From sequence record OQ708376.1: DNA of 64,000 bases; one strand, written 5' to 3'. Under the pieces are notes generated by a model that saw only the letters and a program-made list of their open reading frames with translations, was not told the origin of the DNA and made no database searches. This document shows, piece by piece, positions 50 through 64,000 of the stretch; within the stretch, counting starts at the first letter, position 1; every line of letters begins with the position of its first letter. A program made the position numbers and the translations under genes.

Positions 50-316
50 ATGAATTATAAAGATTTCCTACTAACATACAAGATTATTCGAGATTTAGCA
101 CACGACAATGATAGCCCTAGTCTAGAAGACACATGCACTGAAATGATTCATACGATTCGTGGTAAGATTAAAAAAAAATTCAGTACTGTTATTATTGGTG
201 ATGACCATGCAGAATTTTCTGATATAATCATTAGACGTGATGGTAAAGTTGAGGTTCAGTACTACACTGATTTTGGATTTACCAGTATTCCGTTGGAGAT
301 ATTCCCTTGGGATTAA
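50..316 (+). CDS. hypothetical protein, tandem paralogue family A
   Basis: Packed + strand ORF; N-terminal D(F/I)xxTYK motif shared with the next ORFs. Confidence 0.7.
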   Translation: MNYKDFLLTYKIIRDLAHDNDSPSLEDTCTEMIHTIRGKIKKKFSTVIIGDDHAEFSDIIIRRDGKVEVQYYTDFGFTSIPLEIFPWD

Positions 317-618
317 ATTTAAATGATATACAATTCACTTATAAGATCCTATATGATTTGTATGATGTATACCTTGTTAGTAACAACATAGGTTCACATA
401 ACCGATCCAAAGAACAACCATTTATTGATTTATATATTGAGTACTTAGATTCAGTAGGTGAATATATAAAAAAGAATTACAGTACTTTTATCGATGGAAA
501 TGATAAATTCGATTTCTATGGTGTGCAATCATATAATGGTATAATCCATGTTCAATTTCAGGAAATAACCGATAGGGGATTTATCGAGATTAAAGTTGTG
601 AAGTTGGTGAATTTATAA
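307..618 (+). CDS. hypothetical protein, paralogue family A
   Basis: LNDIQFTYKILY; TTG start uncertain. Confidence 0.7.
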   Translation: MGLNLNDIQFTYKILYDLYDVYLVSNNIGSHNRSKEQPFIDLYIEYLDSVGEYIKKNYSTFIDGNDKFDFYGVQSYNGIIHVQFQEITDRGFIEIKVVKLVNL

Positions 619-628
619 GAGGTTACAT

Positions 629-940
629 ATGTTATTAAATGATATACAATTCACATACAAATTTTTGTATATCCAATACGCTACGGTTGATGCTGGAGAA
701 TATCTCTACAGTGAAATCTATCGTTCGGTATGGATAAAGTTTTTGGATGAATTACATGAATATTACCATGATTTGTGTATAGTTCGTGATAATAAAATAT
801 ACAAATTCCGCGATATTGTTAGTCATAGCGGTAAGCTACGATTGGAATTAAGTACTGATAGTGATGTTGATTGGATTGGTGTAAATTTACTGGAATTGAA
901 GAATGAAAAACAACTTAAAGGAAATACAAGTATTTTATAA
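629..940 (+). CDS. hypothetical protein, paralogue family A
   Basis: LNDIQFTYKFLY; GAGG upstream of ATG. Confidence 0.75.
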   Translation: MLLNDIQFTYKFLYIQYATVDAGEYLYSEIYRSVWIKFLDELHEYYHDLCIVRDNKIYKFRDIVSHSGKLRLELSTDSDVDWIGVNLLELKNEKQLKGNTSIL

Positions 941-1187
941 ATTCTTATACTTATCATATGTAAAAGATGAGTACTATGAAAGTGTGTATTATTTTTTATG
1001 GCAACATTACCGTACTATAGTAAGAGATTTATATATAGGAAAATCTATCATATCCAATGGTGAAAAATGTATCTGTACGGATGTAGTTAGTTTTAATGGT
1101 TCTTTAACACTGTGTTTCAGATGCGATAATAATAGTGGGTCATTTTCATTAAACGTATATCAGTTAGAAGGAATAAATTTTGAATAA
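903..1187 (+). CDS. hypothetical protein, paralogue family A
   Basis: LKEIQVFYKFLY. Confidence 0.7.
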   Translation: MKNNLKEIQVFYKFLYLSYVKDEYYESVYYFLWQHYRTIVRDLYIGKSIISNGEKCICTDVVSFNGSLTLCFRCDNNSGSFSLNVYQLEGINFE

Positions 1188-1380
1188 ATGTCCATATTGT
1201 AACAGTACTCAATTAGCTCGTTTCCGTTTAGATTCAGACTGGGCGACTGGTGCTGGTGATTTCTTCCCTATTAATGATGATGCGGAATACACCGAAGAAC
1301 AACACAAAGATTTTGATAAATCATGGCGACCTGACATTGAGTGCATTTATTGCCTTAATTGTGAGCGTGTTCATGACTAA
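1180..1380 (+). CDS. small zinc-ribbon protein
   Basis: CPYC near N-terminus and CLNC near C-terminus. Confidence 0.65.
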   Translation: MNKCPYCNSTQLARFRLDSDWATGAGDFFPINDDAEYTEEQHKDFDKSWRPDIECIYCLNCERVHD

Positions 1381-1636
1381 AGCTGAACTAATAGTTCATA
1401 CATATAAAATGATATCAAGTACTGAGTTATCATATAGTGCAGATAATCCAGTACTGGATTATTTTGTTGAATTATTGAAAGAGCATTATATTGGTAAATC
1501 ACTGATTCTTAATAATATTAATTTCACGGTAAAGGATGTAGCACCTGGAAAAAACGTACTAATAGTATGTGTTACTTCATCTGATAACCCAGTATACCCA
1601 ATATCAATAATTTTTGAGATATTAGGAGATTTATGA
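1373..1636 (+). CDS. hypothetical protein, paralogue family A
   Basis: Start moved to in-frame ATG 1373 (MTKAELIVHTYK), overlapping the previous stop. Confidence 0.65.
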   Translation: MTKAELIVHTYKMISSTELSYSADNPVLDYFVELLKEHYIGKSLILNNINFTVKDVAPGKNVLIVCVTSSDNPVYPISIIFEILGDL

Positions 1637-1923
1637 ATATCATTTTAATGCAGAAAACATATGCTATATTGGTGAAAGATTATTCCATTACTTTCGATTC
1701 ACAAGAAAGTGCTCTACATAACCTATACAAAAACGTAACACAAGAATACAGAAATATGTTTTCTGACTTAGTAGTAGGAAGGTATTTCAGTACTAGAAAA
1801 TACCCAAAACTTCAAATAGTTGATGTTTCTTTTTATTTCAATGGTCATATTACTATTCATAGTTTAGACCAAGATTCAACAACGTACTTAAACTTTTCAT
1901 TTGATGAGGTAACATTTTTATGA
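1633..1923 (+). CDS. hypothetical protein, distant family A member
   Basis: GGAG upstream; ATGA overlap; MQKTYAIL. Confidence 0.7.
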   Translation: MNIILMQKTYAILVKDYSITFDSQESALHNLYKNVTQEYRNMFSDLVVGRYFSTRKYPKLQIVDVSFYFNGHITIHSLDQDSTTYLNFSFDEVTFL

Positions 1924-2096
1924 GAACAGTATTTTTTATCTGGAGTCTTTTTTCATTGGCAGTACTGACAGTATGTGGGATTTGTTTCCTTTCATCAATT
2001 AATACTTGGTATATCAATTTACTATTTCCATTTGTCGGTGTTGGTTTAGGGTTTACTTTGCATAGTGTATGTAAGGATTACAATGAGAACAAATGA
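1920..2096 (+). CDS. small membrane protein (58 aa), not in the ORF track
   Basis: Translated by hand: MRTVFFIWSLFSLAVLTVCGICFLSSINTWYINLLFPFVGVGLGFTLHSVCKDYNENK; two hydrophobic stretches; ATGA overlap. Confidence 0.6.
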   Translation: MRTVFFIWSLFSLAVLTVCGICFLSSINTWYINLLFPFVGVGLGFTLHSVCKDYNENK

Positions 2097-2361
2097 AGTA
2101 CTTATTGCTGAAACAATGAAGATGATTTACAATATCACGTCAGCACAGAATATGCCCTATCCAACTAAGTCTTTATTGAGGACTGTGTATCTGGGGATAG
2201 TACAGGAGTACTACAAATCCAAGCACCGAAGCATTATTAGTGTTTATCGTGATTATGAAAGGATTCGTATTTTATTCTGGAACAAGAATCGAGTACGTTC
2301 TGAATGTGACCTAGTGGACTTTAAATTAGAGAATCTTTATTGCTATAAACAGGGACAATAG
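2083..2361 (+). CDS. hypothetical protein
   Basis: AAGGA upstream of in-frame ATG 2083. Confidence 0.65.
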   Translation: MRTNEVLIAETMKMIYNITSAQNMPYPTKSLLRTVYLGIVQEYYKSKHRSIISVYRDYERIRILFWNKNRVRSECDLVDFKLENLYCYKQGQ

Positions 2362-2379
2362 TTTAATTCATGATATAAT
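2352..2379 (+). promoter_or_regulatory. promoter, GGGACA-N16-TATAAT class (extended -10)
   Basis: GGGACA 2352-2357, TGA+TATAAT ending 2379, upstream of ORF 2411. Confidence 0.65.
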
Positions 2380-2410
2380 AATGGGTAAGGAACAATAATT
2401 AACACAAGGA

Positions 2411-3148
2411 GTGTGTGAAATGCTTGACCGTATCCGTTTCGCTACAGAGATGGCGAATGAATTAAACATGGCAAATTTCCAAATGTTAACATCAGTAATG
2501 GCTGAACATGCATGTGCTTATTCTGTAAGTGGTGTGCAGTGTGGTCAGGAGAATATGTTAGCAGATGTTTATAGTGAAGTGCAAAGTAAGCAATATAGTG
2601 TAAAGACATATAAGGATAAGTTTGTTAGTCTTTATATGAACGAAGATATTGCTGAAGACCGTAAATTCACTGATTTTATTATTGAACGACGAGTATCAGG
2701 TGTATCTAATCCTAATGCATCAAGCGAGGAAGTTTTTGCAGAAGTACTGAAAGATATATACGAAAATGAATTAAAAAGTAAGAATCATTACAATGTACGT
2801 GAAACTAACACAGTGCTCTTGGGATATGATGAAGACGAAGAATACTATTATTTTCGTATGACTGAAGTTCCTTTTGAATACAAATCTCCATATACAACTA
2901 CAGTGAAAGAATTTACTGAAAAAAGTAAAAACTTCATGAAGCATGAAGGAAATCGTTGTAGTATAAATGGTTACGACGAAAATGGCATTCACATTTATGA
3001 GTGGGTTCACCCAAATTGTCAGACATACACTCGTTGCTTGAAAAAACGTTATAATTTAGAAGAGCATGAATCATTCTATTTTAAAGTTAAGAAGCAAGGT
3101 TACACTCGCCCCGCCGATTCTGAATTGATGGGTATGATATATTTCTAA
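2411..3148 (+). CDS. hypothetical protein
   Basis: 245 aa ORF; AAGGAG upstream of GTG. Confidence 0.8.
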   Translation: MCEMLDRIRFATEMANELNMANFQMLTSVMAEHACAYSVSGVQCGQENMLADVYSEVQSKQYSVKTYKDKFVSLYMNEDIAEDRKFTDFIIERRVSGVSNPNASSEEVFAEVLKDIYENELKSKNHYNVRETNTVLLGYDEDEEYYYFRMTEVPFEYKSPYTTTVKEFTEKSKNFMKHEGNRCSINGYDENGIHIYEWVHPNCQTYTRCLKKRYNLEEHESFYFKVKKQGYTRPADSELMGMIYF

Positions 3149-3158
3149 GGAAACTTCT

Positions 3159-3440
3159 ATGGATTTTTATCTACACACATGGACATACGAACAATATATT
3201 ACATTATATCTTGAAATTATTAACACAGAACCTAGGTGTGGTTGTTGGTTCGCAGATATCATAAAAGAGTATGCTGACGAGTTCGAGTTTGTGTATCTTG
3301 GGTCTGATATATTTGTAAAAAGTGTAGGTAAAACCGGACGAATCACTGATATAGATTACGACACTGTTAGTGTGAATTTCTATGTTGATTTTCCTGATGC
3401 TGGAGTTGATGGTGTATATTGTCTTTATGAAATAATTTAA
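3159..3440 (+). CDS. hypothetical protein
   Basis: AAGGA upstream. Confidence 0.7.
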   Translation: MDFYLHTWTYEQYITLYLEIINTEPRCGCWFADIIKEYADEFEFVYLGSDIFVKSVGKTGRITDIDYDTVSVNFYVDFPDAGVDGVYCLYEII

Positions 3441-3446
3441 ATTCTT

Positions 3447-3471
3447 AGGCCAGCGTTTGCTGGTCTTTTTT
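3447..3471 (+). terminator. intrinsic terminator
   Basis: AGGCCAGC-gttt-GCTGGTCT followed by T run. Confidence 0.65.
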
Positions 3472-3484
3472 CGCAGGTACAAAG

Positions 3485-3787
3485 ATGTTCAGTATAGATT
3501 TAATTAACAGTACTATCAAAATGTTGGCTGATTTGGTGAGACAATCCAATGGAACTTTATATCCATCAATGTATAAAATGTTTGACCGATACATCAAGGA
3601 TTGTAACATATCATTATATGGACTTACTGTTGATATAGACGATTACTATGGAATTAATACTTCATATAAAACAGGAATTTTAATTGGTATTAATATAAAG
3701 ATGGGGTATTTCCCTTATTACTGTATAGGATTACCAGATAATACTTTGGTAGAATATCCAGCCAGTACTATTAAATTAAGAGGATAA
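3485..3787 (+). CDS. hypothetical protein
   Basis: Packed + strand ORF. Confidence 0.65.
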   Translation: MFSIDLINSTIKMLADLVRQSNGTLYPSMYKMFDRYIKDCNISLYGLTVDIDDYYGINTSYKTGILIGINIKMGYFPYYCIGLPDNTLVEYPASTIKLRG

Positions 3788-3794
3788 AACTAAA

Positions 3795-4373
3795 ATGAAT
3801 GTATTAGAATTAAGTACTAAGCTGATTAGTATGCGTAATGAGTGGTACGATTGGTTTTATAATGGTACTGATATGAATTTTTCAAAATATCCATTTATGG
3901 AATCAGGATGTGATTCAAGATACCGCTGGTTGAGCAAAAGTGATTCTGGTTTACATATTAGAATCGATGATAGTGGTCGAGGAATTATACACGATTTACT
4001 TCAAGTTGATCAATTCGTCCATGACAATTGGTGTGATAACGATCCATACCTTGGAAATATGATTTATATAAGTGAAGATGATTGCGTATTCGTTATCCAG
4101 CGACATGGTAATTCTATGTTTTATGTAGCAGACAGCAGTACACCAGAAGGTGCAGCAGCCGATGGACTTATGCCTAAGATTGATATATTGGAATTTGGAT
4201 TACCTGAGCACTTCCAGATTAGTACTTTATACGATATTCCACCACTTGAGTTCTTTGAAGAATTTAAATTGTACTTCAATGATCTTCAAAAATTGAGTAC
4301 TGATAGACGCATTGAAATAACTGTTAAGTACATGGACGGAACGAAATTAACCGATACGGGGATAGAATTTTGA
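3795..4373 (+). CDS. hypothetical protein
   Basis: 192 aa; GAGGA upstream. Confidence 0.75.
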   Translation: MNVLELSTKLISMRNEWYDWFYNGTDMNFSKYPFMESGCDSRYRWLSKSDSGLHIRIDDSGRGIIHDLLQVDQFVHDNWCDNDPYLGNMIYISEDDCVFVIQRHGNSMFYVADSSTPEGAAADGLMPKIDILEFGLPEHFQISTLYDIPPLEFFEEFKLYFNDLQKLSTDRRIEITVKYMDGTKLTDTGIEF

Positions 4374-5059
4374 TTAAAGATTTAGATAGAATTTTATATG
4401 TACTAAGGGGTGTAATTACATTACATCCACAAATCAATCGAATTGAAAGTACATTTCAGTTGGAGTCAAGAGAAACTCCATATTCACATATATCAAATGT
4501 AGTTGGTTCACTCAGTACTGAAGACTCGTCTTACGATATTTGTGTATGTGAAGTACAACCAAGTTCGGATCTTGGATTTGCTATTTTTGATAAAAATCAA
4601 AATCTCATTAGTATGTTTCAGTGCAATAATCCTTTTTGGAAAACATGCCTGTATCCAGAGTGGGCTATGCTTGATCCAACCAAGAGTACCATTAAAGTTT
4701 ATGACTCTAAAAATGATGAAGTCGTTATTGATTTAGATGAGTCAATGTCAGAGGAAGAACACTTTCAGCTAATGATGATGCGTGCTATGCCTGAATACAA
4801 TGCAATGATTAACACTGTGCAATACATTAAGGATACCATGCCAGCGTTGCGTACACATGAGTTTTGTCATCCGGTATTGTATGAACATCTAGATTTAGAC
4901 TTCAGTACTATTAAATTTAAAGATAGTGTTAAAAAATATATTCAAGAGAATGTTAAATTTGATTTTATTAGTACTATGAACAATAATCCAAAAACTAATT
5001 TTAGGCATCAGTACAATGAATCTTTGTCCGGTGGACGTGATACCAGTTGGTGGAAATAA
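4370..5059 (+). CDS. hypothetical protein (EEHFQ-motif family)
   Basis: 229 aa; MSEEEHFQL segment resembles ORFs at 43123 and 58991-60401. Confidence 0.75.
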   Translation: MIKDLDRILYVLRGVITLHPQINRIESTFQLESRETPYSHISNVVGSLSTEDSSYDICVCEVQPSSDLGFAIFDKNQNLISMFQCNNPFWKTCLYPEWAMLDPTKSTIKVYDSKNDEVVIDLDESMSEEEHFQLMMMRAMPEYNAMINTVQYIKDTMPALRTHEFCHPVLYEHLDLDFSTIKFKDSVKKYIQENVKFDFISTMNNNPKTNFRHQYNESLSGGRDTSWWK

Positions 5060-5060
5060 T

Positions 5061-5324
5061 ATGAATATTAAAGATAGATTACAATTACTGTACACACTTG
5101 AACAGGCTGCTTATGATCTTGTTCGAAAAATCTCAGATGAACTACCTAAAGGAACTAAAGTTCGTGTACGTGAGATGAATTATTTTTCTGGAGTAATTGA
5201 AGAACAAGTACTAACAGTGAATAAAGTAACATACTATGAATCTGAGTTGTCTATTCAGTGTGAATCTGATGATGGATTAATATCATATTATGGAACTGAT
5301 GTAGATATAGAGGTAATAAAATGA
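5061..5324 (+). CDS. hypothetical protein
   Basis: Start moved to in-frame ATG 5061 just after the previous stop. Confidence 0.65.
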   Translation: MNIKDRLQLLYTLEQAAYDLVRKISDELPKGTKVRVREMNYFSGVIEEQVLTVNKVTYYESELSIQCESDDGLISYYGTDVDIEVIK

Positions 5325-6463
5325 CCCTTTTGCAAATATATGAAGATTTAATGCACTTATGTAATACAAACGATGCATTCTTTTATGTGGATCATAAAAG
5401 TCCTGCTGGTGGCACGTATCGTGTATTCAGTTATCGTCTAGCATCATACACTGATTTCATGCAACCAAATGCGTTGGAAACCCGTGGCTCTATGTGGGAA
5501 ATTGATGAAGAAGGTGACATGATACGTTGTGCAGCACGTACAATGAAAAAGTTCTTCAATGCTTACGAGAATCCTGCTACAATGTTCCCTGCTAACACCA
5601 CATGCGATGACATTGCGGTAGTGATGCCTAAGTTGGATGGCTCGATCATCAGTACTTATCGTGATAATGATGGTGAGATTCGTTGTAAATCACATACTGC
5701 ATTGTATTCTGACCATGCGATTAACAGTACTCGACTTATTAACGAGAACCAGAATTTGTATCAGTACATCGACGAAGCGGAACGTTTAGGTTACACAGTT
5801 AATATGGAGTATACAAGCCCAGAGTACCGAATTGTATTACCATATCAGGTAGAACAACTGTTTGTACTGAACGTTCGTCATCGTGTGAGTGGTGAGTTGC
5901 TATGTGGTAAAGCACTACGTGATAAGTTTCCATGTCTTGCACAGTACAGTACTAATATGACTGGAAAAGATATTCATCACACTTTTCCGGTACGAAATAC
6001 CTTCCGTGAAAGCGTGGAGGAAGTTCATAAAATGCTTGATATTGAGGGTTTTGTGTGCATCCTAAATAATGGGACAATGTGTAAAATAAAGACTGACTGG
6101 TACAGTTCATTACATCTTACAAAAGATAGTATTATTATTGATTCTCATTTATATGAAGCAGTATTAAATGGTTCAAGTGATGATTTAAAACAATTGTTCA
6201 GTACTGATGAATATGCTATGCAAAAGATATTAAGAATGGAACAATTGGTATTTTCGTGCTATAATGCATTACAAGATGAAGTAGAAAGCTTCGTCAAGGA
6301 ACACAAGCACTTGGAGCGAAAGGAATTCGCAATGAAGGTTCAGGAGTGTTTAACTAATGAACTGAATCGTCAGGGCTTGGCCTTTGCAATGTATAACAAT
6401 AAGAAAGTTGATTACAAAGAGACTCTTATAAAATACATGAAAATTGTACTAAAGGATTTTTAG
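5321..6463 (+). CDS. rnlA: T4 Rnl1-type RNA ligase
   Basis: Adenylation motif KLDGSII, N-terminal FSYRLASY, KFFN, EGFV, KIK; lies upstream of PNKP. Confidence 0.92.
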   Translation: MTLLQIYEDLMHLCNTNDAFFYVDHKSPAGGTYRVFSYRLASYTDFMQPNALETRGSMWEIDEEGDMIRCAARTMKKFFNAYENPATMFPANTTCDDIAVVMPKLDGSIISTYRDNDGEIRCKSHTALYSDHAINSTRLINENQNLYQYIDEAERLGYTVNMEYTSPEYRIVLPYQVEQLFVLNVRHRVSGELLCGKALRDKFPCLAQYSTNMTGKDIHHTFPVRNTFRESVEEVHKMLDIEGFVCILNNGTMCKIKTDWYSSLHLTKDSIIIDSHLYEAVLNGSSDDLKQLFSTDEYAMQKILRMEQLVFSCYNALQDEVESFVKEHKHLERKEFAMKVQECLTNELNRQGLAFAMYNNKKVDYKETLIKYMKIVLKDF

Positions 6464-6490
6464 TACTATCTAGCCTAAGCACAAGGAGAA

Positions 6491-6748
6491 GTGATGGCTA
6501 AACCTAAGTATAAAAATGACGGTTCCCTTTCTCCGACTGAATTCAGGAAAATACAAGAAGAAATCGATGAATTACAGCACAAACGCTCAATGAAAGGTGT
6601 GAAGATAAGTAAGAAACGAATCGAGAATACCTTCGGATGTAGTAGTACTGAATACAAGAAGAAAAGGAAACCAAAAGGTGTTAAGCCGAGAATACATGAT
6701 GTAACTCGCTATACATCGAAACGTGAAAATAAATTTGATCCACTATAA
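6491..6748 (+). CDS. small basic hypothetical protein
   Basis: AAGGAG upstream; Lys/Arg rich. Confidence 0.7.
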   Translation: MMAKPKYKNDGSLSPTEFRKIQEEIDELQHKRSMKGVKISKKRIENTFGCSSTEYKKKRKPKGVKPRIHDVTRYTSKRENKFDPL

Positions 6749-6757
6749 GGAGTTCAT

Positions 6758-6988
6758 ATGAAAGTTGAAGTTCAGCATAGTATTGTTCAGGATATGTCAG
6801 TAGTTAAATTTCTTTCTCTGAAAGATTACTTCAGATGTATCAAGTTCCTAGAAGAATCTCAATTACAGTGGACCCCATTAAAGTACAGTTCATCCAATGA
6901 TACTGCTAGTATTCGTTGTGATGAATCTGTACTTGTGAAAATCTCCAAGCGATTTGGAGTAGGAAAAGTTAATGAGCACAGTAAGTGA
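6758..6988 (+). CDS. hypothetical protein
   Basis: AAGGAG upstream. Confidence 0.7.
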   Translation: MKVEVQHSIVQDMSVVKFLSLKDYFRCIKFLEESQLQWTPLKYSSSNDTASIRCDESVLVKISKRFGVGKVNEHSK

Positions 6989-7226
6989 CCTAAAATACTA
7001 CAACAAAACTGCGGATACGTTTATTACTCATTTATATGAAGAATTTAGTCGTATCCGTGAGGAATATACAGGTAAATGTATTTTATATAGTTCTTATCAT
7101 AGTGGTGGAATTGAAAGTGCTTACATTACTAAAGTGAAGTTTTCTGATGACTATCAATTACTCTTTGAATTAGATGATTGTTTCGTTATTGAAGCTTGTT
7201 TGATAGTGGATGTTCTAGATAATTGA
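6972..7226 (+). CDS. hypothetical protein
   Basis: Packed + strand ORF. Confidence 0.65.
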   Translation: MSTVSDLKYYNKTADTFITHLYEEFSRIREEYTGKCILYSSYHSGGIESAYITKVKFSDDYQLLFELDDCFVIEACLIVDVLDN

Positions 7227-7232
7227 GGACAT

Positions 7233-7547
7233 ATGAATAAAGAACTTGCATTTGAGAGGATCGAAAAGTTAAAGTACATTGAAAAGGAACTAATAGAATC
7301 TGTCGAATCAATGGTCGAAGATTACGTTTTCGATTTTAAGAAAACATTGATTGGATGTAAAGTTAAATGCTGGGATCATACAATCAGAGAATGGTTCAGT
7401 ACTATAATTCTTGATGTTAAAGTATCGCGTACTGCTATTGGTAATTTAGTAAATGGTGAATGCTTTGTATACACTGAATACAATAACGGAACAAGAAACC
7501 TTTCAAGAGGATGGCACAAACTCGAAGATGTAGAATTCATTGAGTAA
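7233..7547 (+). CDS. hypothetical protein
   Basis: GAGGA upstream. Confidence 0.7.
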   Translation: MNKELAFERIEKLKYIEKELIESVESMVEDYVFDFKKTLIGCKVKCWDHTIREWFSTIILDVKVSRTAIGNLVNGECFVYTEYNNGTRNLSRGWHKLEDVEFIE

Positions 7548-7559
7548 CAAGGAGTAATA

Positions 7560-8492
7560 ATGCCAACTATTACACTAACAGTTGGATTACCTGGGTGTGG
7601 TAAAACCACATGGGCAGTTCAAGAAATTAAAAATGCCAAATCCAAGACTATCAACATCAACCGTGATGATATTCGTGAATCTATGGCTGGGTCACATGAT
7701 GCTTACAAATTCAACGATGCTAATGAGCAGTACGTAACTAATTTACAGTTCAGTGCAGCAAATTCAGCAGCAGAGAATGGTTGGAACATCATCATATCCG
7801 ATACAAACCTTAAACAACATTTCCGTAATCTCTGGAAAGTATGGGCTAAAGATAATGGTTATGATTACAAAGAAAAGAACTTCTATGATGATTTTGTACC
7901 TAATGAAGACCGTGGTGCAGATGTTCATGAATTCTTTAAGATTAAAGAGTTCGTAAAACTTTGTAAGAAATATAACCTCCAGCGTGAGCGTTCAGTACAA
8001 GATGATATCATTGACACAATGGCAGATACGTACTATTATAGTAAGGCATTGCACATTGGTTACTATGGTAATTCACGAGAAGCTGCTGTTATCGTTGATA
8101 TTGACGGTACTCTTGCTCATAAATGGGGTCGTAATCCTTACGATGAAAGTACTGTTCTTCAGGATACACCTGATGAAGAAGTTATTTTGTCTATTATCGC
8201 TGAAGCAGTTTTTCATAAACGCAAGATTATCGTCATGAGTGGGCGTACTGAAGGGTGTCGTGCTGATACCGAACAGTGGCTTAAGAATTGGGGTGTTCCT
8301 TACGATGCATTGTTTATGCGAGATATCGATGATAAACGTCCTGATGATGTTGTAAAATTCGACCTGTACATGAAAAATGTGGTTGATCATTACGATGTTA
8401 AAAAGGTATATGATGACCGAGCACAAGTCGTATTCATGTGGCGTAAGCTACTTGGTTTGAAAGTTTTTCAAGTTGCAGAAGGAAATTTCTAA
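7560..8492 (+). CDS. pseT: polynucleotide 5'-kinase/3'-phosphatase (PseT-like)
   Basis: P-loop GLPGCGKTTW, NRDDIR, DTNL; HAD motif VDIDGTLA; C-terminal KRPDD and YDDR. Confidence 0.95.
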   Translation: MPTITLTVGLPGCGKTTWAVQEIKNAKSKTININRDDIRESMAGSHDAYKFNDANEQYVTNLQFSAANSAAENGWNIIISDTNLKQHFRNLWKVWAKDNGYDYKEKNFYDDFVPNEDRGADVHEFFKIKEFVKLCKKYNLQRERSVQDDIIDTMADTYYYSKALHIGYYGNSREAAVIVDIDGTLAHKWGRNPYDESTVLQDTPDEEVILSIIAEAVFHKRKIIVMSGRTEGCRADTEQWLKNWGVPYDALFMRDIDDKRPDDVVKFDLYMKNVVDHYDVKKVYDDRAQVVFMWRKLLGLKVFQVAEGNF

Positions 8493-8495
8493 TAC

Positions 8496-8528
8496 AAAAG
8501 GGATCATATGTTGGTCCCTTTTTCTTTT
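8496..8528 (+). terminator. intrinsic terminator
   Basis: AAAAGGGATC-atatgtt-GGTCCCTTTT plus T run. Confidence 0.75.
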
Positions 8529-8541
8529 AAGGAATATTATA

Positions 8542-8718
8542 ATGAATGTAAAAACACAGATGTTATTACAAAAAGAATACTTAGAAAATATAGAAATGTT
8601 CTATAGATTGTCTTTATACGAAAATAAACATAAAAAATATAGCTTTTCTAAACATCTAAACACAAGTACTGATGATTATCTATTTTCATCAATGTTTTAT
8701 GTGAGAGGTTTATTATAA
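8542..8718 (+). CDS. hypothetical protein
   Basis: AAGGA upstream of in-frame ATG 8542. Confidence 0.55.
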   Translation: MNVKTQMLLQKEYLENIEMFYRLSLYENKHKKYSFSKHLNTSTDDYLFSSMFYVRGLL

Positions 8719-8978
8719 TGGATAAATTTCACACAGATATAACACAGATAGGTAATCTTATCAATAGTCTAATTACTGATTTAGAAGAAAAGTATTTAGG
8801 TCGAAATGTATACGTAGAAATGTATGAAACATATGGTGTTATTGATATGATTTATTACAGTGCATTGAAGTGTGAAATACGTTTAACAGTATGTTTGTTT
8901 GAAAAAAATACATTCAACAGAAGTACTGCAATTCGCCAAGTTGGAGTTGATGATATAGAATTATACGAGGAACAATGA
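8718..8978 (+). CDS. hypothetical protein
   Basis: GAGG upstream; TAATG overlap. Confidence 0.7.
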   Translation: MDKFHTDITQIGNLINSLITDLEEKYLGRNVYVEMYETYGVIDMIYYSALKCEIRLTVCLFEKNTFNRSTAIRQVGVDDIELYEEQ

Positions 8979-9229
8979 TGTTTGAGCAGGACTTAGAGAT
9001 ATTCAAAAGTCATATTGATTACTTGACTATATTAGAAAATGATTTAACTACAAAGTACAAAGGTATTCGTGTTCTGTGCTGGTATGATGATTGGGATTAT
9101 AAACGTGAACTCACGATTGATCGAATTTATTTCAGTGACGGTGTACTAAATGTACATGGTGTAAATGATTTTGGTCATTCATATACATATTCTAATAATG
9201 CTAAATTTAAAAGGATCTACAATGAATGA
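8975..9229 (+). CDS. hypothetical protein
   Basis: GAGGA upstream; ATGA overlap. Confidence 0.7.
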   Translation: MMFEQDLEIFKSHIDYLTILENDLTTKYKGIRVLCWYDDWDYKRELTIDRIYFSDGVLNVHGVNDFGHSYTYSNNAKFKRIYNE

Positions 9230-9524
9230 ATATTATCATAATTTATTCGATTACATAAAACTAATAGATGATCTTTCTTTTGAATTTCTCAGTACTGAAA
9301 AAGTTCTTGAACCTCTCTATTATGATTGTATTAGTTCACTATGTTTAGATGAAAAAGAGATATTAGCAAACAACTTACCATCCACGGTCTGTACAATCAA
9401 TGGTTCCAAGGCATTAGTGTGCGAGGTTAATTTTCATAAATCACTTAATACAATTGTTTACAAGTTCGATAACACTTGGGTAAATCATGTAACCAGTAAT
9501 ATTAAATCTGTGAGATTTTTATGA
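9222..9524 (+). CDS. hypothetical protein
   Basis: AAGGA upstream of in-frame ATG 9222. Confidence 0.65.
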   Translation: MNEYYHNLFDYIKLIDDLSFEFLSTEKVLEPLYYDCISSLCLDEKEILANNLPSTVCTINGSKALVCEVNFHKSLNTIVYKFDNTWVNHVTSNIKSVRFL

Positions 9525-9817
9525 ATATAAAAAAATTATTTGAACAAGTAAATTTATTGTACTGGTGTTCAGACGGTTCAGATAAGGAATATAGTGAAGT
9601 TTATTTAGAACTGTTTAGAACTGAAATTCATCAAATTCGAAGATACCTAATTGATAACAAAACTAAAGTACAAGTAAGATACCATAACGGTACTTTAAAG
9701 AATGGTGTAATTATTGGATTGATAGTTACACGAATGTCTAATAATATTAAAGTTGCAGTTAGATTAATGACTGATGATGGTGTCTACACAATAGAAGCTA
9801 GTGAGATTATATATTAA
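9521..9817 (+). CDS. hypothetical protein
   Basis: ATGA overlap. Confidence 0.65.
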   Translation: MNIKKLFEQVNLLYWCSDGSDKEYSEVYLELFRTEIHQIRRYLIDNKTKVQVRYHNGTLKNGVIIGLIVTRMSNNIKVAVRLMTDDGVYTIEASEIIY

Positions 9818-10123
9818 ATGGATATACAAACATTCAATAAACTTAAGTACTATGATGATGGTTTTGCATTAATAATTAACGAACTTGATGGAATACCATA
9901 CGAATATCATAATCAAGTAATGAAGATAATAAAATGTATATGTGAAGAATTAAAAAGTATATTTAAAAATGAATATGTTTATGATTTAGGTAATAATAGC
10001 AAAAAACTATACATAAAGAAATTCTGGGGAACGCATTGCGGTTTGATGGTCGATTTAGGTTTAAGTTTAGACGATAATTCTGAATCATGTTCATTATATA
10101 TAGATGAAATGCGAATATCATGA
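9818..10123 (+). CDS. hypothetical protein
   Basis: Abuts the previous stop. Confidence 0.65.
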   Translation: MDIQTFNKLKYYDDGFALIINELDGIPYEYHNQVMKIIKCICEELKSIFKNEYVYDLGNNSKKLYIKKFWGTHCGLMVDLGLSLDDNSESCSLYIDEMRIS

Positions 10124-10149
10124 GACGTATCAGAATTCGGTGATATAAT
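10122..10149 (+). promoter_or_regulatory. variant of the GGGACA-N16-TATAAT promoter
   Basis: GAGACG-N16 with TGA+TATAAT (10144-10149). Confidence 0.5.
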
Positions 10150-10180
10150 TTGATTACATCACCAATAGGGAGAAGTTGAA

Positions 10181-10507
10181 GTGAATGGTTCGTTTTTAAC
10201 AATATTAGAAAAGACAACCGAGATGCTTTCTAGCTCGTTAATGCAGATTTTCAGTACTAATAATTTATACAATACCCAGGTGTTAGATTCAATTAATAAT
10301 AACTATGTGGTAAGTATATCTGATGAAATATGTCCATTTAACGCGTATTCAATTTATAGTGTAGAAGAGTTTCATATATCCGAGATTCGATGTGGTTTTG
10401 GTGCTTGGTTAGTTCTAAATGAACGTTCAGGGTTGTCTTTATACATCGAAGAAGTTAGTAAATTTATATACAAAGGAGTAGAATATGTTAACCCCAATTA
10501 TTCTTAG
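10181..10507 (+). CDS. hypothetical protein
   Basis: GGGAG upstream of GTG. Confidence 0.6.
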   Translation: MNGSFLTILEKTTEMLSSSLMQIFSTNNLYNTQVLDSINNNYVVSISDEICPFNAYSIYSVEEFHISEIRCGFGAWLVLNERSGLSLYIEEVSKFIYKGVEYVNPNYS

Positions 10508-11452: not shown

Positions 11453-11454
11453 TT

Positions 11455-11921: not shown

Positions 11922-11923
11922 TA

Positions 11924-12667: not shown

Positions 12668-12672
12668 TAATT

Positions 12673-12942: not shown

Positions 12943-12952
12943 GGAAATAGAA

Positions 12953-49476: not shown

Positions 49477-49477
49477 A

Positions 49478-53181: not shown

Positions 53182-53554
53182 ATTCCACCAGCATTGTTCT
53201 ATACATGAATGTGATGATTGTGGTATACAAATGAGTGACATTTATACTGTTTCATGTAAAGGTTTCAAATTCTCTCACGGTGAACCTGCTTATTGTTATG
53301 GTACAGAAGAAGGTGATATCGAAGTAGTACTGAAAGAATTGTTCCAGTACTTGCAAAGTGTAGGTCATGATGTTACAATACCCACATATTATGAAGATGA
53401 TTATGATGCACATGTAGAAGAAAATACATATTATAATCAATTCGTTTATGGTAATGGTTTTATCACATACCTACATGAGAATGGTATTGAGGTAAAAACT
53501 AAGTACACCAGTGATGATTATGATGATGATAATTCTATGGAGATTGAAGATTGA
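53162..53554 (+). CDS. acidic protein with possible zinc site
   Basis: HECDDCG. Confidence 0.7.
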   Translation: MQIKKIKFHQHCSIHECDDCGIQMSDIYTVSCKGFKFSHGEPAYCYGTEEGDIEVVLKELFQYLQSVGHDVTIPTYYEDDYDAHVEENTYYNQFVYGNGFITYLHENGIEVKTKYTSDDYDDDNSMEIED

Positions 53555-56380: not shown

Positions 56381-56725
56381 ATGAAATACATCGATAAAGG
56401 TACAGTGGAGACACAGTACTGGAATATCCATATTGCTGGTGATATTCAAACAGCAAGAGAGTACACAAGAAAGTTTGCGTTTAAGCATGGCTTTTGTGTA
56501 CAATTAATTCCCTGTGAATATATCTACACTGGCGGTCTTGAAAGTGGGATGTGTGCTCGTATTATTCAGTACCCACGCTTTCCAAAAGAAGAAGTATATC
56601 TCAACCGAGATGTATTAAACTATGCAAAGGGTTTAGCTGAAGAGTTGTGTCAAAAGAGCTTTACTATAGAGCGAAATAATGATACAATTTATTATGAAAG
56701 TGATGAACCTTTACACAAGAAATAA
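56381..56725 (+). CDS. hypothetical protein
   Basis: GGAG upstream of ATG 56381; YIYTGG.E.G...IIQYPRFP. Confidence 0.75.
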   Translation: MKYIDKGTVETQYWNIHIAGDIQTAREYTRKFAFKHGFCVQLIPCEYIYTGGLESGMCARIIQYPRFPKEEVYLNRDVLNYAKGLAEELCQKSFTIERNNDTIYYESDEPLHKK

Positions 56726-57661: not shown

Positions 57662-58588
57662 TTGAAACAAGCGAAAAAAGCACTGAAAACTAAGACTACT
57701 TATGGTGTTCTAGTTTGCACAGTACTTGTCGCTGCGATTGGATTTTATGGTTTTTCTCAAAATGATCGTGTATCATCATCGGACGAAAGTCAGGTACACA
57801 ATTTAAAACCACAAGTTACGCAAATTCAAAAGCAGGAATTACCAAAGGTAGAAATATCAAAGGATGTTCCACGCGGCGAGAAGCATTATACGGTTCAACC
57901 TGGTGATAGTTATTATTCTATTGCTAAAAAGTTTAAACCTAAAAATGTACAACTTGAAGAGTATGTTATTTTGTTGAAAAATATCAATTTAAATGCTACT
58001 CTTCATACTTCTCAGGGTATCTTTATCCCAACAAAAGAGGATTTGAAGAACGTATTGTTACCAGATGTGACTGTACTGTTTGATTATAATGATCCAGAAA
58101 TTGTCAATCACATCAAAGAAGCTGAAGGTTCAATTGAATTTCAGTCCAAGAACAAACGCCGTTTACTTGGTGGGAAAGTCGGAGTTCCTTTCCACAATTC
58201 TAAATTTCATCCCTACAAGGACATGAAAGGTAATTATACAATAGGTTATGGGCATTATTTGGGTAGAAAAGAATCTGATGCGATTAAGTACAGAAACGGT
58301 ATTACCAAAGCTCAAGCCAATAAACTTTTAATGCAAGATATGAAAAGAACATATAATGACTTTTTATTATTGATGCAGAAAAAAGAAGCAGTAAATCTGA
58401 CCAAAGAACAACAACGTATTCTTTATGAAATGTCCTATACAATGGGTGTTGATAAATTAGCAACGTTTAATAAACTTTGGAAAAGTGTGAAAAATGATAA
58501 CCCTAAGAAATTTAAAAAAGAAATTATGAATTCCTTATGGTATCGTCAAGTTACAAACCGAGCAGATTTGTTGTTAAGTTCACTCTAA
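57662..58588 (+). CDS. membrane-anchored LysM + T4-lysozyme-like muramidase
   Basis: N-terminal TM helix; LysM YTVQPGDSYYSIAKKF; lysozyme IKEAEG, YKD..G..TIGYGH, LWYRQV..RA; TTG start 4 nt after AAGGAGG. Confidence 0.85.
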   Translation: MKQAKKALKTKTTYGVLVCTVLVAAIGFYGFSQNDRVSSSDESQVHNLKPQVTQIQKQELPKVEISKDVPRGEKHYTVQPGDSYYSIAKKFKPKNVQLEEYVILLKNINLNATLHTSQGIFIPTKEDLKNVLLPDVTVLFDYNDPEIVNHIKEAEGSIEFQSKNKRRLLGGKVGVPFHNSKFHPYKDMKGNYTIGYGHYLGRKESDAIKYRNGITKAQANKLLMQDMKRTYNDFLLLMQKKEAVNLTKEQQRILYEMSYTMGVDKLATFNKLWKSVKNDNPKKFKKEIMNSLWYRQVTNRADLLLSSL

Positions 58589-58604
58589 AAAAGGTAGGTA
58601 AATT

Positions 58605-58937
58605 ATGCTAAAATTAAATATTCAAGGTAATGTTGATTTTACTACAGCAATTCAAGATGCAATTTACGATGGTGCTAAATGTCTTGAAAAGTTCCGTACT
58701 TCAACTGTAATGGATATTGAAGTTCATGTGAAGAAAGAGCATAAGTCTCAATACTCTGTGACTATAACATCAGGTAGTAAATCAGTTACTGCCGATGCAG
58801 CAGATTTATACAAAGCAATTGGTGATTCATTTGAAAAAATGGAAACTGTATTCAGTAAAGACAAAAGCATTAAATTACACCGCCGAAACCATCCAGAACA
58901 CCCAGTTCTTAATGATTTGACAGAAAACGAAGAGTAA
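58605..58937 (+). CDS. hpf: ribosome hibernation factor (HPF/RaiA-like)
   Basis: LNIQG.NVDFT.AI, DLYKAIGDSFEKM pattern matches HPF; acidic tail. Confidence 0.75.
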   Translation: MLKLNIQGNVDFTTAIQDAIYDGAKCLEKFRTSTVMDIEVHVKKEHKSQYSVTITSGSKSVTADAADLYKAIGDSFEKMETVFSKDKSIKLHRRNHPEHPVLNDLTENEE

Positions 58938-58946
58938 TATATACTA

Positions 58947-58975
58947 AAGGGACAGATTAATTCTGTCCCTTTTCT
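58947..58975 (+). terminator. intrinsic terminator
   Basis: AAGGGACAG-attaatt-CTGTCCCTT then T run. Confidence 0.8.
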
Positions 58976-58990
58976 TATGGAGTTTTAATT

Positions 58991-59386
58991 ATGAATTATT
59001 CCTGGATGGAAATTGTAAAATCTCTAATATCAACACATGATATGGACTTACCTGAACACCTAGTTATTAATAGATGGTACTATCCATATCCAGATAACCG
59101 TTGTGTTGGGATTGGATTTTTTATTAATGAAAAATCTCAATATATTGGATTAATTGAAGATTATACAAAAACCAACATTGCGTTCTCTATTGAGTTGAAT
59201 GTAGATCACATAAAATACTACACCAATAAAATGGACGAAGACGATGGTGATGTTATAATTCCAGCAGAAATAGACGAAGCTTCATTTTTTCAGTTATCAT
59301 TAATTCATGATGTATCTGATATTACTTATGATAATGTGAAAGACCTTTTTATATTGTACAATAAACTGTATAATTACTTTTTATAA
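58991..59386 (+). CDS. hypothetical protein (E.SFFQ-motif family)
   Basis: IDEASFFQLSL; GGAG upstream. Confidence 0.7.
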   Translation: MNYSWMEIVKSLISTHDMDLPEHLVINRWYYPYPDNRCVGIGFFINEKSQYIGLIEDYTKTNIAFSIELNVDHIKYYTNKMDEDDGDVIIPAEIDEASFFQLSLIHDVSDITYDNVKDLFILYNKLYNYFL

Positions 59387-59399
59387 TGGAGATAAATTT

Positions 59400-59585
59400 A
59401 TGGAATATACAATATGTATAGTTATATGTATCATATCCTTACTAGTCGGGGTTGGTGTGATGATTTATTGTGATGCAGAACCCAGTACAGAAACAGGAAC
59501 AACTATTGAACTTAAGCCTGGTATTAAGGTAAATGATTCATATTGTTACGATCCACATAGTAATAAGTATGTGATTTGTATATGA
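59400..59585 (+). CDS. small membrane protein
   Basis: N-terminal hydrophobic helix; GGAG upstream. Confidence 0.65.
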   Translation: MEYTICIVICIISLLVGVGVMIYCDAEPSTETGTTIELKPGIKVNDSYCYDPHSNKYVICI

Positions 59586-59992
59586 AAAAGTTTGATATTA
59601 AACCTATGATTGATGCTATCGAAATTAAATTAAAAAATACTAAAAAGCCAGATAGTACAGGTTTGTTCTTTAGTTTAGATAAAATGTATTATGAAACACA
59701 CGTGTCAAGTTATGATAGAACAGGAAATCTCTTCATCCGTACATATAACTTATTTTATAGTGAAGATGTTTTTATGATAGATATAAATCTGGATGAAAGT
59801 ATAGTGTTGATGTATATTGAGGATGTTCAATCAACAGAACAACGAAACGGGACTCTTCCTATTGCTGCTACAGAGGAAGAGTTTATGCAATATCAGTTCA
59901 TTGAGGATACCTTTGGCATTGACTTTGATACATATCAGAGTATAATGAGGGTATACGAACTTTATGAGGATTATGTGATTGGACGTTACTAA
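59582..59992 (+). CDS. hypothetical protein (EEEFMQ-motif family)
   Basis: GTLP...EEEFMQYQFIEDTFGIDF. Confidence 0.7.
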   Translation: MKKFDIKPMIDAIEIKLKNTKKPDSTGLFFSLDKMYYETHVSSYDRTGNLFIRTYNLFYSEDVFMIDINLDESIVLMYIEDVQSTEQRNGTLPIAATEEEFMQYQFIEDTFGIDFDTYQSIMRVYELYEDYVIGRY

Positions 59993-60401
59993 AATTCCAA
60001 AATTTAATGAAACGTTAAAGTACTTTGCTGAACATGAAATCAGTACTGAAAGACGTGGTTTAGTTACATATAATCAACATCGTGTAATGTACACTAATAA
60101 TTTTCAGGGTACTGTTCGTATTAAATTTCGTAATGCACTCGACGACAATGATGAATTGTTAATTTTACTAAGAAAAAGTAAGATTGAATTGACATACGCA
60201 ACTCACCATATTGAAAGTGAGTTGATGTGGCACACCCTATCAAAAAAAGAAGGGACATTACCAGTTGATGATAATGGACCAGAAACACTTGATCAGTACA
60301 TGTTCATTGATGATACATTTGGCATTGACTATTCTGCATATCAGTGTATACTAGCTATACACGAAAAATATTACGACCGTCTACGTGATAGATTAATTTA
60401 A
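59979..60401 (+). CDS. hypothetical protein, paralogue of the previous gene
   Basis: GTLP...QYMFIDDTFGIDY. Confidence 0.7.
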   Translation: MDVTKIPKFNETLKYFAEHEISTERRGLVTYNQHRVMYTNNFQGTVRIKFRNALDDNDELLILLRKSKIELTYATHHIESELMWHTLSKKEGTLPVDDNGPETLDQYMFIDDTFGIDYSAYQCILAIHEKYYDRLRDRLI

Positions 60402-62651: not shown

Positions 62652-62697
62652 ATGTGAAGAACAAAAAGTTCTTCTTAACAATTTGGGAGATACTATT

Positions 62698-62940
62698 ATG
62701 CTCAGTTTTCGTGAACAATTAGCAAAAGGTCAATTTCAGGCTAAAGCTCAAACTAATATTCCTAAAAAATCTGCATTTTTAGGAACAATTACGGAAGATG
62801 GATTTTGTGATTATGATGCACCAGAAGATTCATGGTACATTACAAAAGACACAAAACGCAGTAATAGACTTCACAAAAGTACAATAGCTAGAAAGCATCG
62901 AAAAGAATTAAAGAAAATCCGTTTCGGTGAAGAAGAATAA
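62698..62940 (+). CDS. hypothetical protein
   Basis: GGGAG upstream of in-frame ATG 62698. Confidence 0.7.
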   Translation: MLSFREQLAKGQFQAKAQTNIPKKSAFLGTITEDGFCDYDAPEDSWYITKDTKRSNRLHKSTIARKHRKELKKIRFGEEE

Positions 62941-62949
62941 TTTAAAATA

Positions 62950-62978
62950 AGGACTCTGAACACAGAGTCCTTTCTTTT
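62950..62978 (+). terminator. intrinsic terminator
   Basis: AAGGACTCTG-aaca-CAGAGTCCTT then T-rich run. Confidence 0.8.
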
Positions 62979-62989
62979 CGGAGAATATA

Positions 62990-63466
62990 ATGATTCATGA
63001 ACACCGAGGTAATCTGTTTGAATTATTCAGTACTGTTACAGATGATAAAACAGCAATACATATAATTGCTCATGGTTGTAACGCACAGGGTAAAATGGGT
63101 TCAGGTTTTGCAAAAGAGCTAAGAAATCGTTACCCAATGGCATATGATGATTATAAAGCATATGAAAAGGAAATGGGATTTCTTAGAATTGGACAAATTG
63201 CATATTCAGCAATTAACGATAATTTGATTATTGCAAACTGTATTACCCAAAAAATGTACGGTAATGACGGTGCTAAATATGTCAGTTATGATGCAATCGA
63301 CGATGTGTTCAAACATCTAAATTATTTTTGTAAAGTTGATCGAGATGTTCATGTACACTTCCCGAAAATTGGAGCCGATTTGGGCGGCGGTAACTGGAAC
63401 GTTATCAAAGAAATCATTGATCACCGACTGGTCAATGCAGAAAAACACTTATACATTCTAAAATAA
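62990..63466 (+). CDS. macrodomain protein (T4 Tk.4/Poa1-like)
   Basis: GNLF, IAHGCNAQGKMGSGFA, FPKIGADLGGGNW. Confidence 0.88.
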   Translation: MIHEHRGNLFELFSTVTDDKTAIHIIAHGCNAQGKMGSGFAKELRNRYPMAYDDYKAYEKEMGFLRIGQIAYSAINDNLIIANCITQKMYGNDGAKYVSYDAIDDVFKHLNYFCKVDRDVHVHFPKIGADLGGGNWNVIKEIIDHRLVNAEKHLYILK

Positions 63467-63485
63467 ACAAAAGGACTTGACAAAA

Positions 63486-63794
63486 ATGACTATGACCGTT
63501 AAACTACTAAACATCAATAACATTGGCCCAGTACTAGCAGTTCTACAAACCGATTCTGCTGAAGCTGTTGTAGTTAACTACCCAGCACAACTAGGGACTG
63601 ACGAAAATGGTGAAATCATTCTTCGTGATTATCTAGAGTTTGTTAGTATGGAGAAAAATGTTATTTTTTATAAATCCAACATTATTAGTGTTAGTGATGC
63701 AAACCCTGCATTAGTTGATGCTTATGTTGATGCTATTAAAGCAATCGAAAACACTCCAAAAGTTTTCGTTCCTGAGAATAAAATCATTCTATAA
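63486..63794 (+). CDS. hypothetical protein, possibly small beta-barrel (Sm-like)
   Basis: AAGGA upstream; start TTG 63477, ATG 63486 or ATG 63492. Confidence 0.65.
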   Translation: MTMTVKLLNINNIGPVLAVLQTDSAEAVVVNYPAQLGTDENGEIILRDYLEFVSMEKNVIFYKSNIISVSDANPALVDAYVDAIKAIENTPKVFVPENKIIL

Positions 63795-63806
63795 TAGAGG
63801 TATATA

Positions 63807-64000
63807 ATGGCTGCTAATGACGTTAAAGTAAAAACTATCCAAGCTATCGTAGTACTGAAAGATTCTACACCATCCCCTAAAGAATTAGTAATGGCTGGGA
63901 TGACTATGTTACATCAATACAACCCTGAATCACCTAACTATGTTCAAGAATACGAAGCTAAGAAGTTTAAAGAACATTGGCAGTCATGGATTAAAGATAA
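63807..64000 (+). CDS. hypothetical protein, runs off the window end
   Basis: GAGG upstream of ATG 63807; open to the end of the window. Confidence 0.65.
   Translation, partial: MAANDVKVKTIQAIVVLKDSTPSPKELVMAGMTMLHQYNPESPNYVQEYEAKKFKEHWQSWIKD

Follow-up and report, generated by a model that had tools for sequence, protein, structure and literature searches.

Why would a phage genome that avoids palindromes to an extreme degree carry one of them, AGTACT, about eight times more often than expected? The question arises from a stretch of 64,000 nucleotides in sequence record OQ708376.1 (here called the window), which matches bases 62001-126000 of Escherichia phage vB_EcoM_CRJP21 at 100% identity. 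CRJP21 is a 366,301-bp Asteriusvirus and Rak2-like jumbo phage with an exact direct terminal repeat of 20,152 bp at its genome ends. The window has a GC content of 33.4%, and the + strand carries nearly all of its genes. An earlier note on this DNA, made from the letters of the window alone, had pointed to an excess of AGTACT in every reading frame and proposed that something selects for or generates the site. The excess in the window stands; we find in addition that it extends genome-wide and clade-wide, is strongest in the terminal repeats and enters into promoter architecture. We conclude that AGTACT is a real, strong, clade-wide and selected DNA signal with a defined role in that architecture. 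Positions below are those of the window unless they are preceded by "record", which refers to OQ708376.1.

Size of the AGTACT excess and selection on the word

The window contains 168 AGTACT sites where a zero-order model predicts 21.5, a 7.8-fold excess that makes AGTACT the commonest of all 6-mers. The earlier hand tally (about 165-170 sites, with about 22 expected at an estimated 32% GC and a roughly 7-8-fold excess) was close throughout: the sites lie at the same positions, the first starting at 182 and the last at 63851, and the numbers per successive 10 kb (35, 31, 25, 29, 19 and 19, followed by 10 in the final 4 kb) differ only in the fourth, which had been put at about 30. The longer word CAGTACTG, present in 32 copies, would be expected 0.6 times. 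The sites can be listed as one feature:

182 to 63856, no strand: AGTACT set, 168 copies, 32 of them as CAGTACTG; 155 in genes (71, 32 and 52 in the three frames) and about 12 intergenic or at gene edges.

Markov models of orders 1 to 3 expect 17 to 55 sites in the window; the order-4 model expects 140, but solely because it is supplied with AGTAC and GTACT, that is, with the signal itself. Among the 16 words of the form NGTACN, only AGTACT shows a clear excess; AGTACA reaches about twice its expectation, and GGTACC and CGTACG are missing altogether. Since the other words of this form show no clear excess, a bias toward the 4-mer GTAC, which the earlier note had named as a possible full explanation, is insufficient.

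When synonymous codons were shuffled within genes, 38.7 ± 5.8 coding sites were expected compared to the 155 found (z = 20), and each of the three frames was 3.6- to 4.5-fold up. A first-order codon Markov model, which preserves codon pairs and by construction retains the frame-0 sites, left an enrichment of about 2-fold in the other two frames (32 against 14.1 expected in frame 1, and 52 against 25.4 in frame 2). Codon choice itself changes where the word can be completed: 71 of the 122 Ser-Thr dipeptides are encoded AGT-ACT where 17 would be expected, the Tyr codons TAC and TAT stand at 32:9 where TAC completes AGTACT and at 345:784 elsewhere, and Val is written GTA in 76% of AGTACT-completing contexts compared to 37% elsewhere. 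Because the choice of codons for Tyr, Val and Ser-Thr flips where AGTACT gets completed, selection must act on the nucleotide word. Together with the shuffle, this bears out the earlier view that the motif occurs in all frames and reflects no amino-acid preference. The Markov, shuffle and codon-pair tests thus reject base composition, GTAC bias, codon usage, protein sequence and codon pairs as the cause.

Conservation, genome-wide distribution and promoter context

An assembly or basecalling artefact, a further concern of the earlier note, can be rejected, since the excess (and the AGTACA block described below) recurs in many independently sequenced relatives. AGTACT is over-represented 7.5-fold in fEgEco12, 8.6-fold in JNE01, 7.0-fold in Salmonella phage Munch, 7.7-fold in A4, 8.4-fold in Cronobacter phage GAP32, 7.4-fold in Yersinia phage fHe-Yen9-04, 7.1-fold in Klebsiella phage RaK2 and 16-fold in the first 50 kb of Pectobacterium phage CBB, so that every Rak2-like genus sampled shows an excess of 7-16-fold. 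There was no excess in T4 (12 sites, 16.7 expected), in one 50-kb sample of E. coli K-12 (3 sites, 11.6 expected) or in an outgroup jumbo phage, Erwinia phage Desertfox (9 sites, 5.6 expected). Because a marker protein in the relatives is only 35-85% identical to the window copy, synonymous sites are saturated, and the excess must therefore be actively maintained. Individual sites are kept as well. Compared to other hexamers in the same frame, orthologous AGTACT is retained in 63% versus 38% of cases in fEgEco12 (83% nucleotide identity), 65% versus 26% in JNE01 (77% nucleotide identity) and 42% versus 14% in Munch (71% nucleotide identity).

Across the whole CRJP21 genome we counted 1022 AGTACT sites against 124 expected (about 8-fold) and 218 copies of CAGTACTG, 60-fold above expectation; under the synonymous shuffle, AGTACT is the most enriched 6-mer of all (3.45-fold). 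At 2.8 sites per kb, the phage is about 45 times richer in the word than its host (about 0.06 per kb). Per 10 kb, the terminal repeats hold 62-69 sites and the first 40 kb of the window (record 60-100 kb) 24-38; the structural and replication core has 11-26, after which the density climbs again toward the right end. In the core, AGTACT is still 3.1-fold up after the synonymous shuffle. Regular spacing, which the earlier note had proposed to examine, and helical phasing can be rejected, as none is seen outside promoters: beyond the terminal repeats the spacing resembles an inhomogeneous Poisson process without helical phasing, and the sites are uniform along genes, with no association with gene starts or ends.

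The flanks of 763 sites are dyad-symmetric: 42% have C immediately before the core (-1) and 46% have G immediately after it (+1), where G and C, respectively, are the rarest bases. Further out, the sequence is rich in T from -2 to -4 and in A from +2 to +4. With these flanks AGTACT gives a 12-bp dyad, tTCAGTACTGAa, in which the information outside the core is small. A longer repeat or mobile element is rejected because the flank logo is informative only to about ±4.

In the terminal repeats of CRJP21, strong sigma-70-type promoters (TTGACA or TTGCAA, 17 bp, TATAAT, with an A-rich upstream tract) carry AGTACT at two fixed places. One copy directly adjoins the -35 (AGTAC-TTGCAA); the other occupies the spacer immediately before the -10 (AGTACT-G/T-TATAAT). 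Counted back from the start of the -10 hexamer, the sites lie at 7-8 bp (17 cases) and at 27 bp (9 cases). In CBB, 13 of the 15 terminal-repeat promoters have AGTACT at the same offsets (10 and 12 cases), usually both, and over the two phages the offsets range over 7-8 bp and 27-29 bp. The paired sites are about 21 bp apart, one on each side of the -35. This arrangement is common to phages with only about 45% protein identity. Late promoters offered too few cases for judging an association with AGTACT.

Similar arrangements can be seen in the window:

21795 to 21845, + strand: promoter-like element with TTGACT, a spacer, AGTACT at 21824 and a -10-like TATTAT, 33 bp before the next gene.

23385 to 23430, + strand: intergenic AGTACT at 23403 with a putative AT-rich, -10-like stretch directly 3' of it, 26 bp before the next gene.

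30030 to 30085, + strand: intergenic site pair (30058 and 30075, 17 bp apart), 12-29 bp before the next gene.

53326 to 53380, + strand: site pair (53326 and 53346, 20 bp apart) with a promoter pattern match at 53351-53379.

The site at 21824 stands just 5' of its -10-like hexamer and that at 53346 abuts a TTGCAA -35-like hexamer, both as in the early promoters of the terminal repeats. The site at 30058 reads AGTACTG-T-CATAAT, with GAAACG further upstream; a GAAACG-type -35 is known from CBB and GAP32 (PMC5259590). A sigma-70-family factor with regions 2, 3 and 4 is encoded at record 303089-304054 (34% identity to CBB_513), and its specificity could involve the AGTACT-(N)-TATAAT arrangement.

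Two stretches without the word may be mentioned here. The longest in the window is:

57727 to 60018, no strand: AGTACT-free stretch of 2.3 kb, within the inhomogeneous Poisson range.

Outside the window, record 20016-25194 is a 5.2-kb AGTACT-free array of open reading frames of about 70 amino acids, in which TGTACT occurs 10 times in similar contexts (..gcTGTACT..), probably as a conserved peptide of this paralog family.

An ACT-free operon, lost palindromes and Chi

A short way inward from the left terminal repeat, and outside the window, the sense strand runs for 7,500 bp (record 27771-35269) without ACT, where about 145 copies would be expected, and AGT is normal. The Poisson expectation of a gap of this length is 8e-60, and no other trinucleotide comes close. 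The block consists of small sense-strand genes, 16 annotated coding sequences (18 by our own open reading frame calls) between two larger intergenic gaps; scans assigned no function to them, and searches for promoters and terminators at its edges gave no informative result. It is conserved in 121Q (7.5 kb), in PBECO4 (7.6 kb) and in the much more distant fEgEco12 (8.3 kb); the first 50 kb of CBB showed no such block. With CRJP21 this makes four Asteriusvirus genomes, the coordinates in the relatives' sequence pieces being:

661 to 8170: ACT-free block.

640 to 8258: ACT-free block.

29020 to 37311: ACT-free block.

AGTACT is absent from the block in CRJP21. Instead, AGTACA is found there in 40 copies, which have the same C/G flanks, occur in every frame and exceed the shuffle expectation 3.1-fold; of 37 aligned AGTACA sites, 19 are kept in fEgEco12 and none has turned into AGTACT. 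We infer that the AGTACT signal survives in the block as the nearest permitted word, AGTACA. That the word is kept even here is further evidence that AGTACT is wanted. One gene of the block also contains three head-to-tail AGTAC units (AGTACAGTACAGTACA, record 31428-31443), and AGTACAGTACA is found at record 30127 and 34242 too.

A separate, strand-specific constraint may bar ACT, or ACU, from the block, and by analogy with MazF and ACA-less mRNAs the simplest candidate would be an ACU-cutting endoribonuclease. Messenger RNAs without ACA resist MazF. The ACT-free operon is like these mRNAs in being a transcript unit without one triplet. Unlike them, it lacks ACU, is 7.5-8.3 kb long and is found in a phage, with no matching RNase identified.

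Other words are avoided altogether: GCGC has 0 copies in 366 kb where 312 would be expected, and 0 in every clade sample. A further 22 GC-rich 6-bp palindromes, including GGTACC, CTGCAG, CCATGG and GGATCC, stand at zero copies, as do the non-palindromic GAGGAG and CAGCTC. The DNA of fEgEco12 is cut as predicted by ten enzymes, ScaI not being among them (PMC13070987). Palindrome avoidance and this normal cutting suggest DNA that is largely unmodified and depends on the avoidance of sites; against this background the AGTACT excess is all the more striking. AGTACT is in the same class as the words that phages avoid (a 6-bp type II palindrome, cut by ScaI/Eco255I) with the sign reversed, 8-fold up; the earlier claim that the excess opposes palindrome depletion is thus well founded.

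Chi of E. coli, GCTGGTGG, has 9 top-strand and 2 bottom-strand copies in the 20-kb terminal repeat of CRJP21 (record 578-18790), compared to 9 top and 5 bottom copies in the 326 kb outside it. The repeats of relatives have 10 top and 2 bottom copies in fEgEco12 and 6-7 top and 2 bottom copies in CBB. The contexts of these Chi copies differ, and they are therefore not one repeat family.

What might read AGTACT

Our preferred explanation, which we hold tentatively, is that a dimeric DNA-binding protein may use AGTACT as an operator-like site, through which it would control early promoters and mark the DNA of the phage. The selection of the word at the DNA level, its symmetry, the kept positions and a fixed place in early promoters that has lasted since the genera diverged all fit a site for a dimeric protein that binds double-stranded DNA, and two same-face sites that bracket the -35 have the geometry of an operator, which points to control of early promoters. 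Among the candidates of the earlier note, a DNA-binding protein appears to fit best, judging from the dyad flanks and the early-promoter offsets; a nicking or packaging signal, also listed there, found no support.

In such a mechanism, tTCAGTACTGAa would be recognised on double-stranded DNA by a symmetric dimer common to the whole Rak2-like clade, which could be phage-encoded, delivered with the virion or a host protein conserved across Enterobacterales. At the paired sites this protein would regulate the early genes, the simplest way being to block access of RNA polymerase and so shut these genes off. At the ~800 intragenic sites it may load preferentially along the phage chromosome and serve as a self-mark, a coat or roadblocks; a density of marks some 45 times that of the host suggests such preferential loading. 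If each site gave a small benefit, as we propose, this would explain the conserved positions.

Several points weigh against this explanation. The reader protein was not found in Pfam scans of about 30 open reading frames among the 632 annotated genes, which yielded a sigma-70-family factor, a DksA/TraR zinc finger, an HNH nuclease, a Dam-family methyltransferase and a C5 methyltransferase. The HTH_37 regulator of CBB and GAP32 (CBB_511 in CBB, where it lies beside the sigma factor) was considered as a candidate and has no detectable homolog in CRJP21. A symmetric duplex reader alone leaves the keeping of the ~800 intragenic sites unexplained, and the spacing of these sites is Poisson-like, with no cooperative arrays outside promoters. 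In the ACT-free operon the signal is present on one strand only (AGTACA 40 copies, TGTACT 0), and a second, strand-specific constraint is therefore needed. Finally, weaker constraint on the proteins of early genes may account for some of the density gradient.

A possible but unlikely alternative is that AGTACT is the target of a phage methyltransferase and that the methyl mark is what is read. Early promoters might then be active only on incoming, fully methylated DNA, or the mark could be a shield against ScaI/Eco255I-type enzymes or a phage nuclease. CRJP21 encodes a Dam-family N6-adenine methyltransferase (record 59509-60030), which with its cytidylyltransferase neighbour is syntenic in CBB and GAP32 and is the only methyltransferase seen syntenic across genera, as well as a C5-cytosine methyltransferase of 286 amino acids (record 278049-278909). 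With its 1022 ScaI-type sites, a genome in which other palindromes are avoided would also need protection if it encountered such an enzyme. However, methylation accounts for the tolerance of sites and not for their 8-fold excess or conserved positions. Two other methyltransferases of GAP32 have no CRJP21 homolog and, among the matches listed, C5 homologs of at least 80% identity come from Asteriusvirus and the next group, at about 51%, is rV5-like (the 60-80% band being left out). Differences at AGTACT sites are C>T in 14 of 54 cases, which is no excess of the 5-methylcytosine type. On a related point, the fEgEco12 ortholog of 56381-56725 is annotated as an S-adenosylmethionine hydrolase, by annotation only; if true, this would bear on methylation during infection.

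We regard as rather unlikely a role in replication or recombination, in which AGTACT would be a preferred primase start, a strong type II topoisomerase site or a Chi-like helicase-nuclease attenuator, the last acting in both directions because the word is palindromic. AGTACT is densest at the genome ends and sparsest mid-genome, and the abundance of true Chi in the terminal repeats shows that end-related DNA-processing signals are selected there. Genes for a T4-type primase-helicase and topoisomerase II are present in the clade, and the one-strand persistence of the word in the ACT-free block is what a polar element would show. Outside that block, however, AGTACA, TGTACT and other NGTACT words stand at 0.8- to 1.2-fold, leaving the palindrome as the selected unit. 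No asymmetric word with an orientation bias, of the kind seen in Chi or FtsK-orienting polar sequences (KOPS), was found, one-strand variants reaching at most 1.2-fold outside the 7.5-kb block. Signals of this type would not predict fixed promoter offsets, and we know of no primase or Chi site that is a 6-bp palindrome.

It is improbable, in our estimate, that the signal is read in RNA. AGUACU holds UACU, a cleavage site of the MazF/PemK family, so transcripts could be built for cutting or binding by a sequence-specific RNase. Enzymes of the MazF/PemK family that cut U^ACU exist in enterobacteria (PMC10864209), and a 7.5-kb operon without sense-strand ACT is the signature of an mRNA immune to an ACU-cutting RNase. 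Dyad-symmetric flanks to ±4 are nevertheless unexpected for an RNA signal, and many AGTACT sites lie at fixed offsets in promoter DNA that is not transcribed. The signal is neither sense-strand-specific nor confined to transcripts, the AGTACT excess being equal in plus- and minus-strand genes, and GTACT without the 5' A shows no sense-strand enrichment. Plain ACT occurs about 19.5 times per kb in the 35-62 kb stretch beside the ACT-free block, so that more sites would have no added effect.

AGTACT could also be made from near-cognate words, without benefit to the phage, by a drive through mutation or repair of the Vsr very-short-patch or HIP1 (highly iterated palindrome 1) type. This seems quite improbable. 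CRJP21 does have a C5-cytosine methyltransferase, and methyltransferase-linked highly iterated palindromes exist in cyanobacteria. Yet one-mismatch neighbours stand at 0.60-1.45 of the shuffle expectation, with no neighbour class emptied, and the deamination neighbours AATACT/AGTATT, at 0.85, are about 74 words short compared to a surplus of about 490 AGTACT. The spectrum of differences at orthologous sites is unbiased in losses and gains, C>T making up 14 of 54 single differences, and the conservation of fixed promoter positions from genus to genus speaks for a function. The genes scanned included none like Vsr, though this amounted to neither a genome-wide Vsr search nor a full gene scan. 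Of the two possibilities left by the earlier note, selection on the DNA word is upheld and Vsr-like generation is disfavoured.

That the sites bind the host nucleoid-occlusion factor SlmA is highly improbable: the binding sequence of this dimeric helix-turn-helix protein, GTGAGTACTCAC, is likewise a 12-bp palindrome with an identical AGTACT centre (PMC3020112), and all clade hosts are Enterobacterales, but SlmA requires G1, T2 and a purine at position 3 (PMC3020112), where the phage sites favour C and disfavour G. The flanks are TTC...GAA in the phage and GTG...CAC for SlmA, so that the bases SlmA needs are those least used in the phage. Since GTRAGYRCTYAC has no match in 346 kb and about 1% of the sites have even one SlmA-type flank, SlmA fails the flank test and is rejected as the reader.

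AGTACT can also be compared to known systems. Like Chi, KOPS, DNA uptake sequences and HIP1, it is a short word far above chance that is found in coding DNA, in all frames, and has been long maintained. Unlike AGTACT, however, Chi, KOPS and DNA uptake sequences are asymmetric and polar, and HIP1 is a cellular palindrome, thought to be methyltransferase-driven, whereas AGTACT is viral and belongs to a genome that purges other palindromes. None of the four is part of promoter architecture, as AGTACT is.

A global DNA-binding protein of the kind we favour has a parallel in SPO1, a lytic phage with long direct terminal repeats and clustered strong early promoters, whose abundant DNA-binding protein TF1 prefers sites there and elsewhere. 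CRJP21 is similar in its terminal repeats with clustered early promoters and in having AGTACT sites both there and genome-wide. TF1 recognises hydroxymethyluracil DNA without a simple hexamer site, whereas CRJP21 has DNA that looks unmodified and a sharp 6-12-bp palindrome in about 1000 copies.

A wider proposal, which we consider more doubtful than the operator-like site itself, is that Rak2-like phages, with unmodified DNA and no phage nucleus, might tell self from host by sequence. GC-rich palindromes, every GCGC included, have nearly all been purged, and about 1000 copies of AGTACT, a word rare in the host, would be read by a dedicated protein that switches early promoters and coats the DNA or forms roadblocks to host nucleases moving along it; the ACT-free operon would indicate that an RNase with sequence specificity acts in the same programme. 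The AGTACT excess itself would be a clear example of a virus in which a restriction-type palindrome is positively selected, with about 1000 maintained copies and a defined place in early promoters. The feature is common to a clade of 350-kb phages of E. coli, Salmonella, Klebsiella, Cronobacter, Pectobacterium and Yersinia, and three companion features, each unusual alone, go with it: total GCGC loss, Chi-rich terminal repeats and a triplet-free operon. It gives a direct handle on a global DNA-binding or marking system, with the 12-bp word as bait and ScaI as a ready probe, and would help to decipher early transcription in these phages, which are poorly understood and candidates for therapy. 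In a full-text literature search that left subscription journals uncovered, we found no report of AGTACT, its promoter context or over-represented jumbo-phage palindromes, and the papers on CBB, RaK2, Sharanji and fEgEco12 do not mention the AGTACT excess or its companion features.

Product names in OQ708376.1 appear displaced relative to the genes: the 1.8-kb NrdD gene at 32746-34551 is labelled hypothetical, and an upstream 360-bp open reading frame is named NrdD. Because the GenBank labels look shifted, we did not rely on them.

The earlier note had held that no reader can be named from the window, and we agree; the only nuclease-like gene seen there, with no specific link to AGTACT, is:

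49433 to 50089, + strand: HNH endonuclease gene (Pfam HNH, E = 1e-5; no PDB relative).

This gene is syntenic in fEgEco12 and Salmonella phage Munch, where it also follows the spanin genes, and such a stable position is unusual for a supposed homing enzyme.

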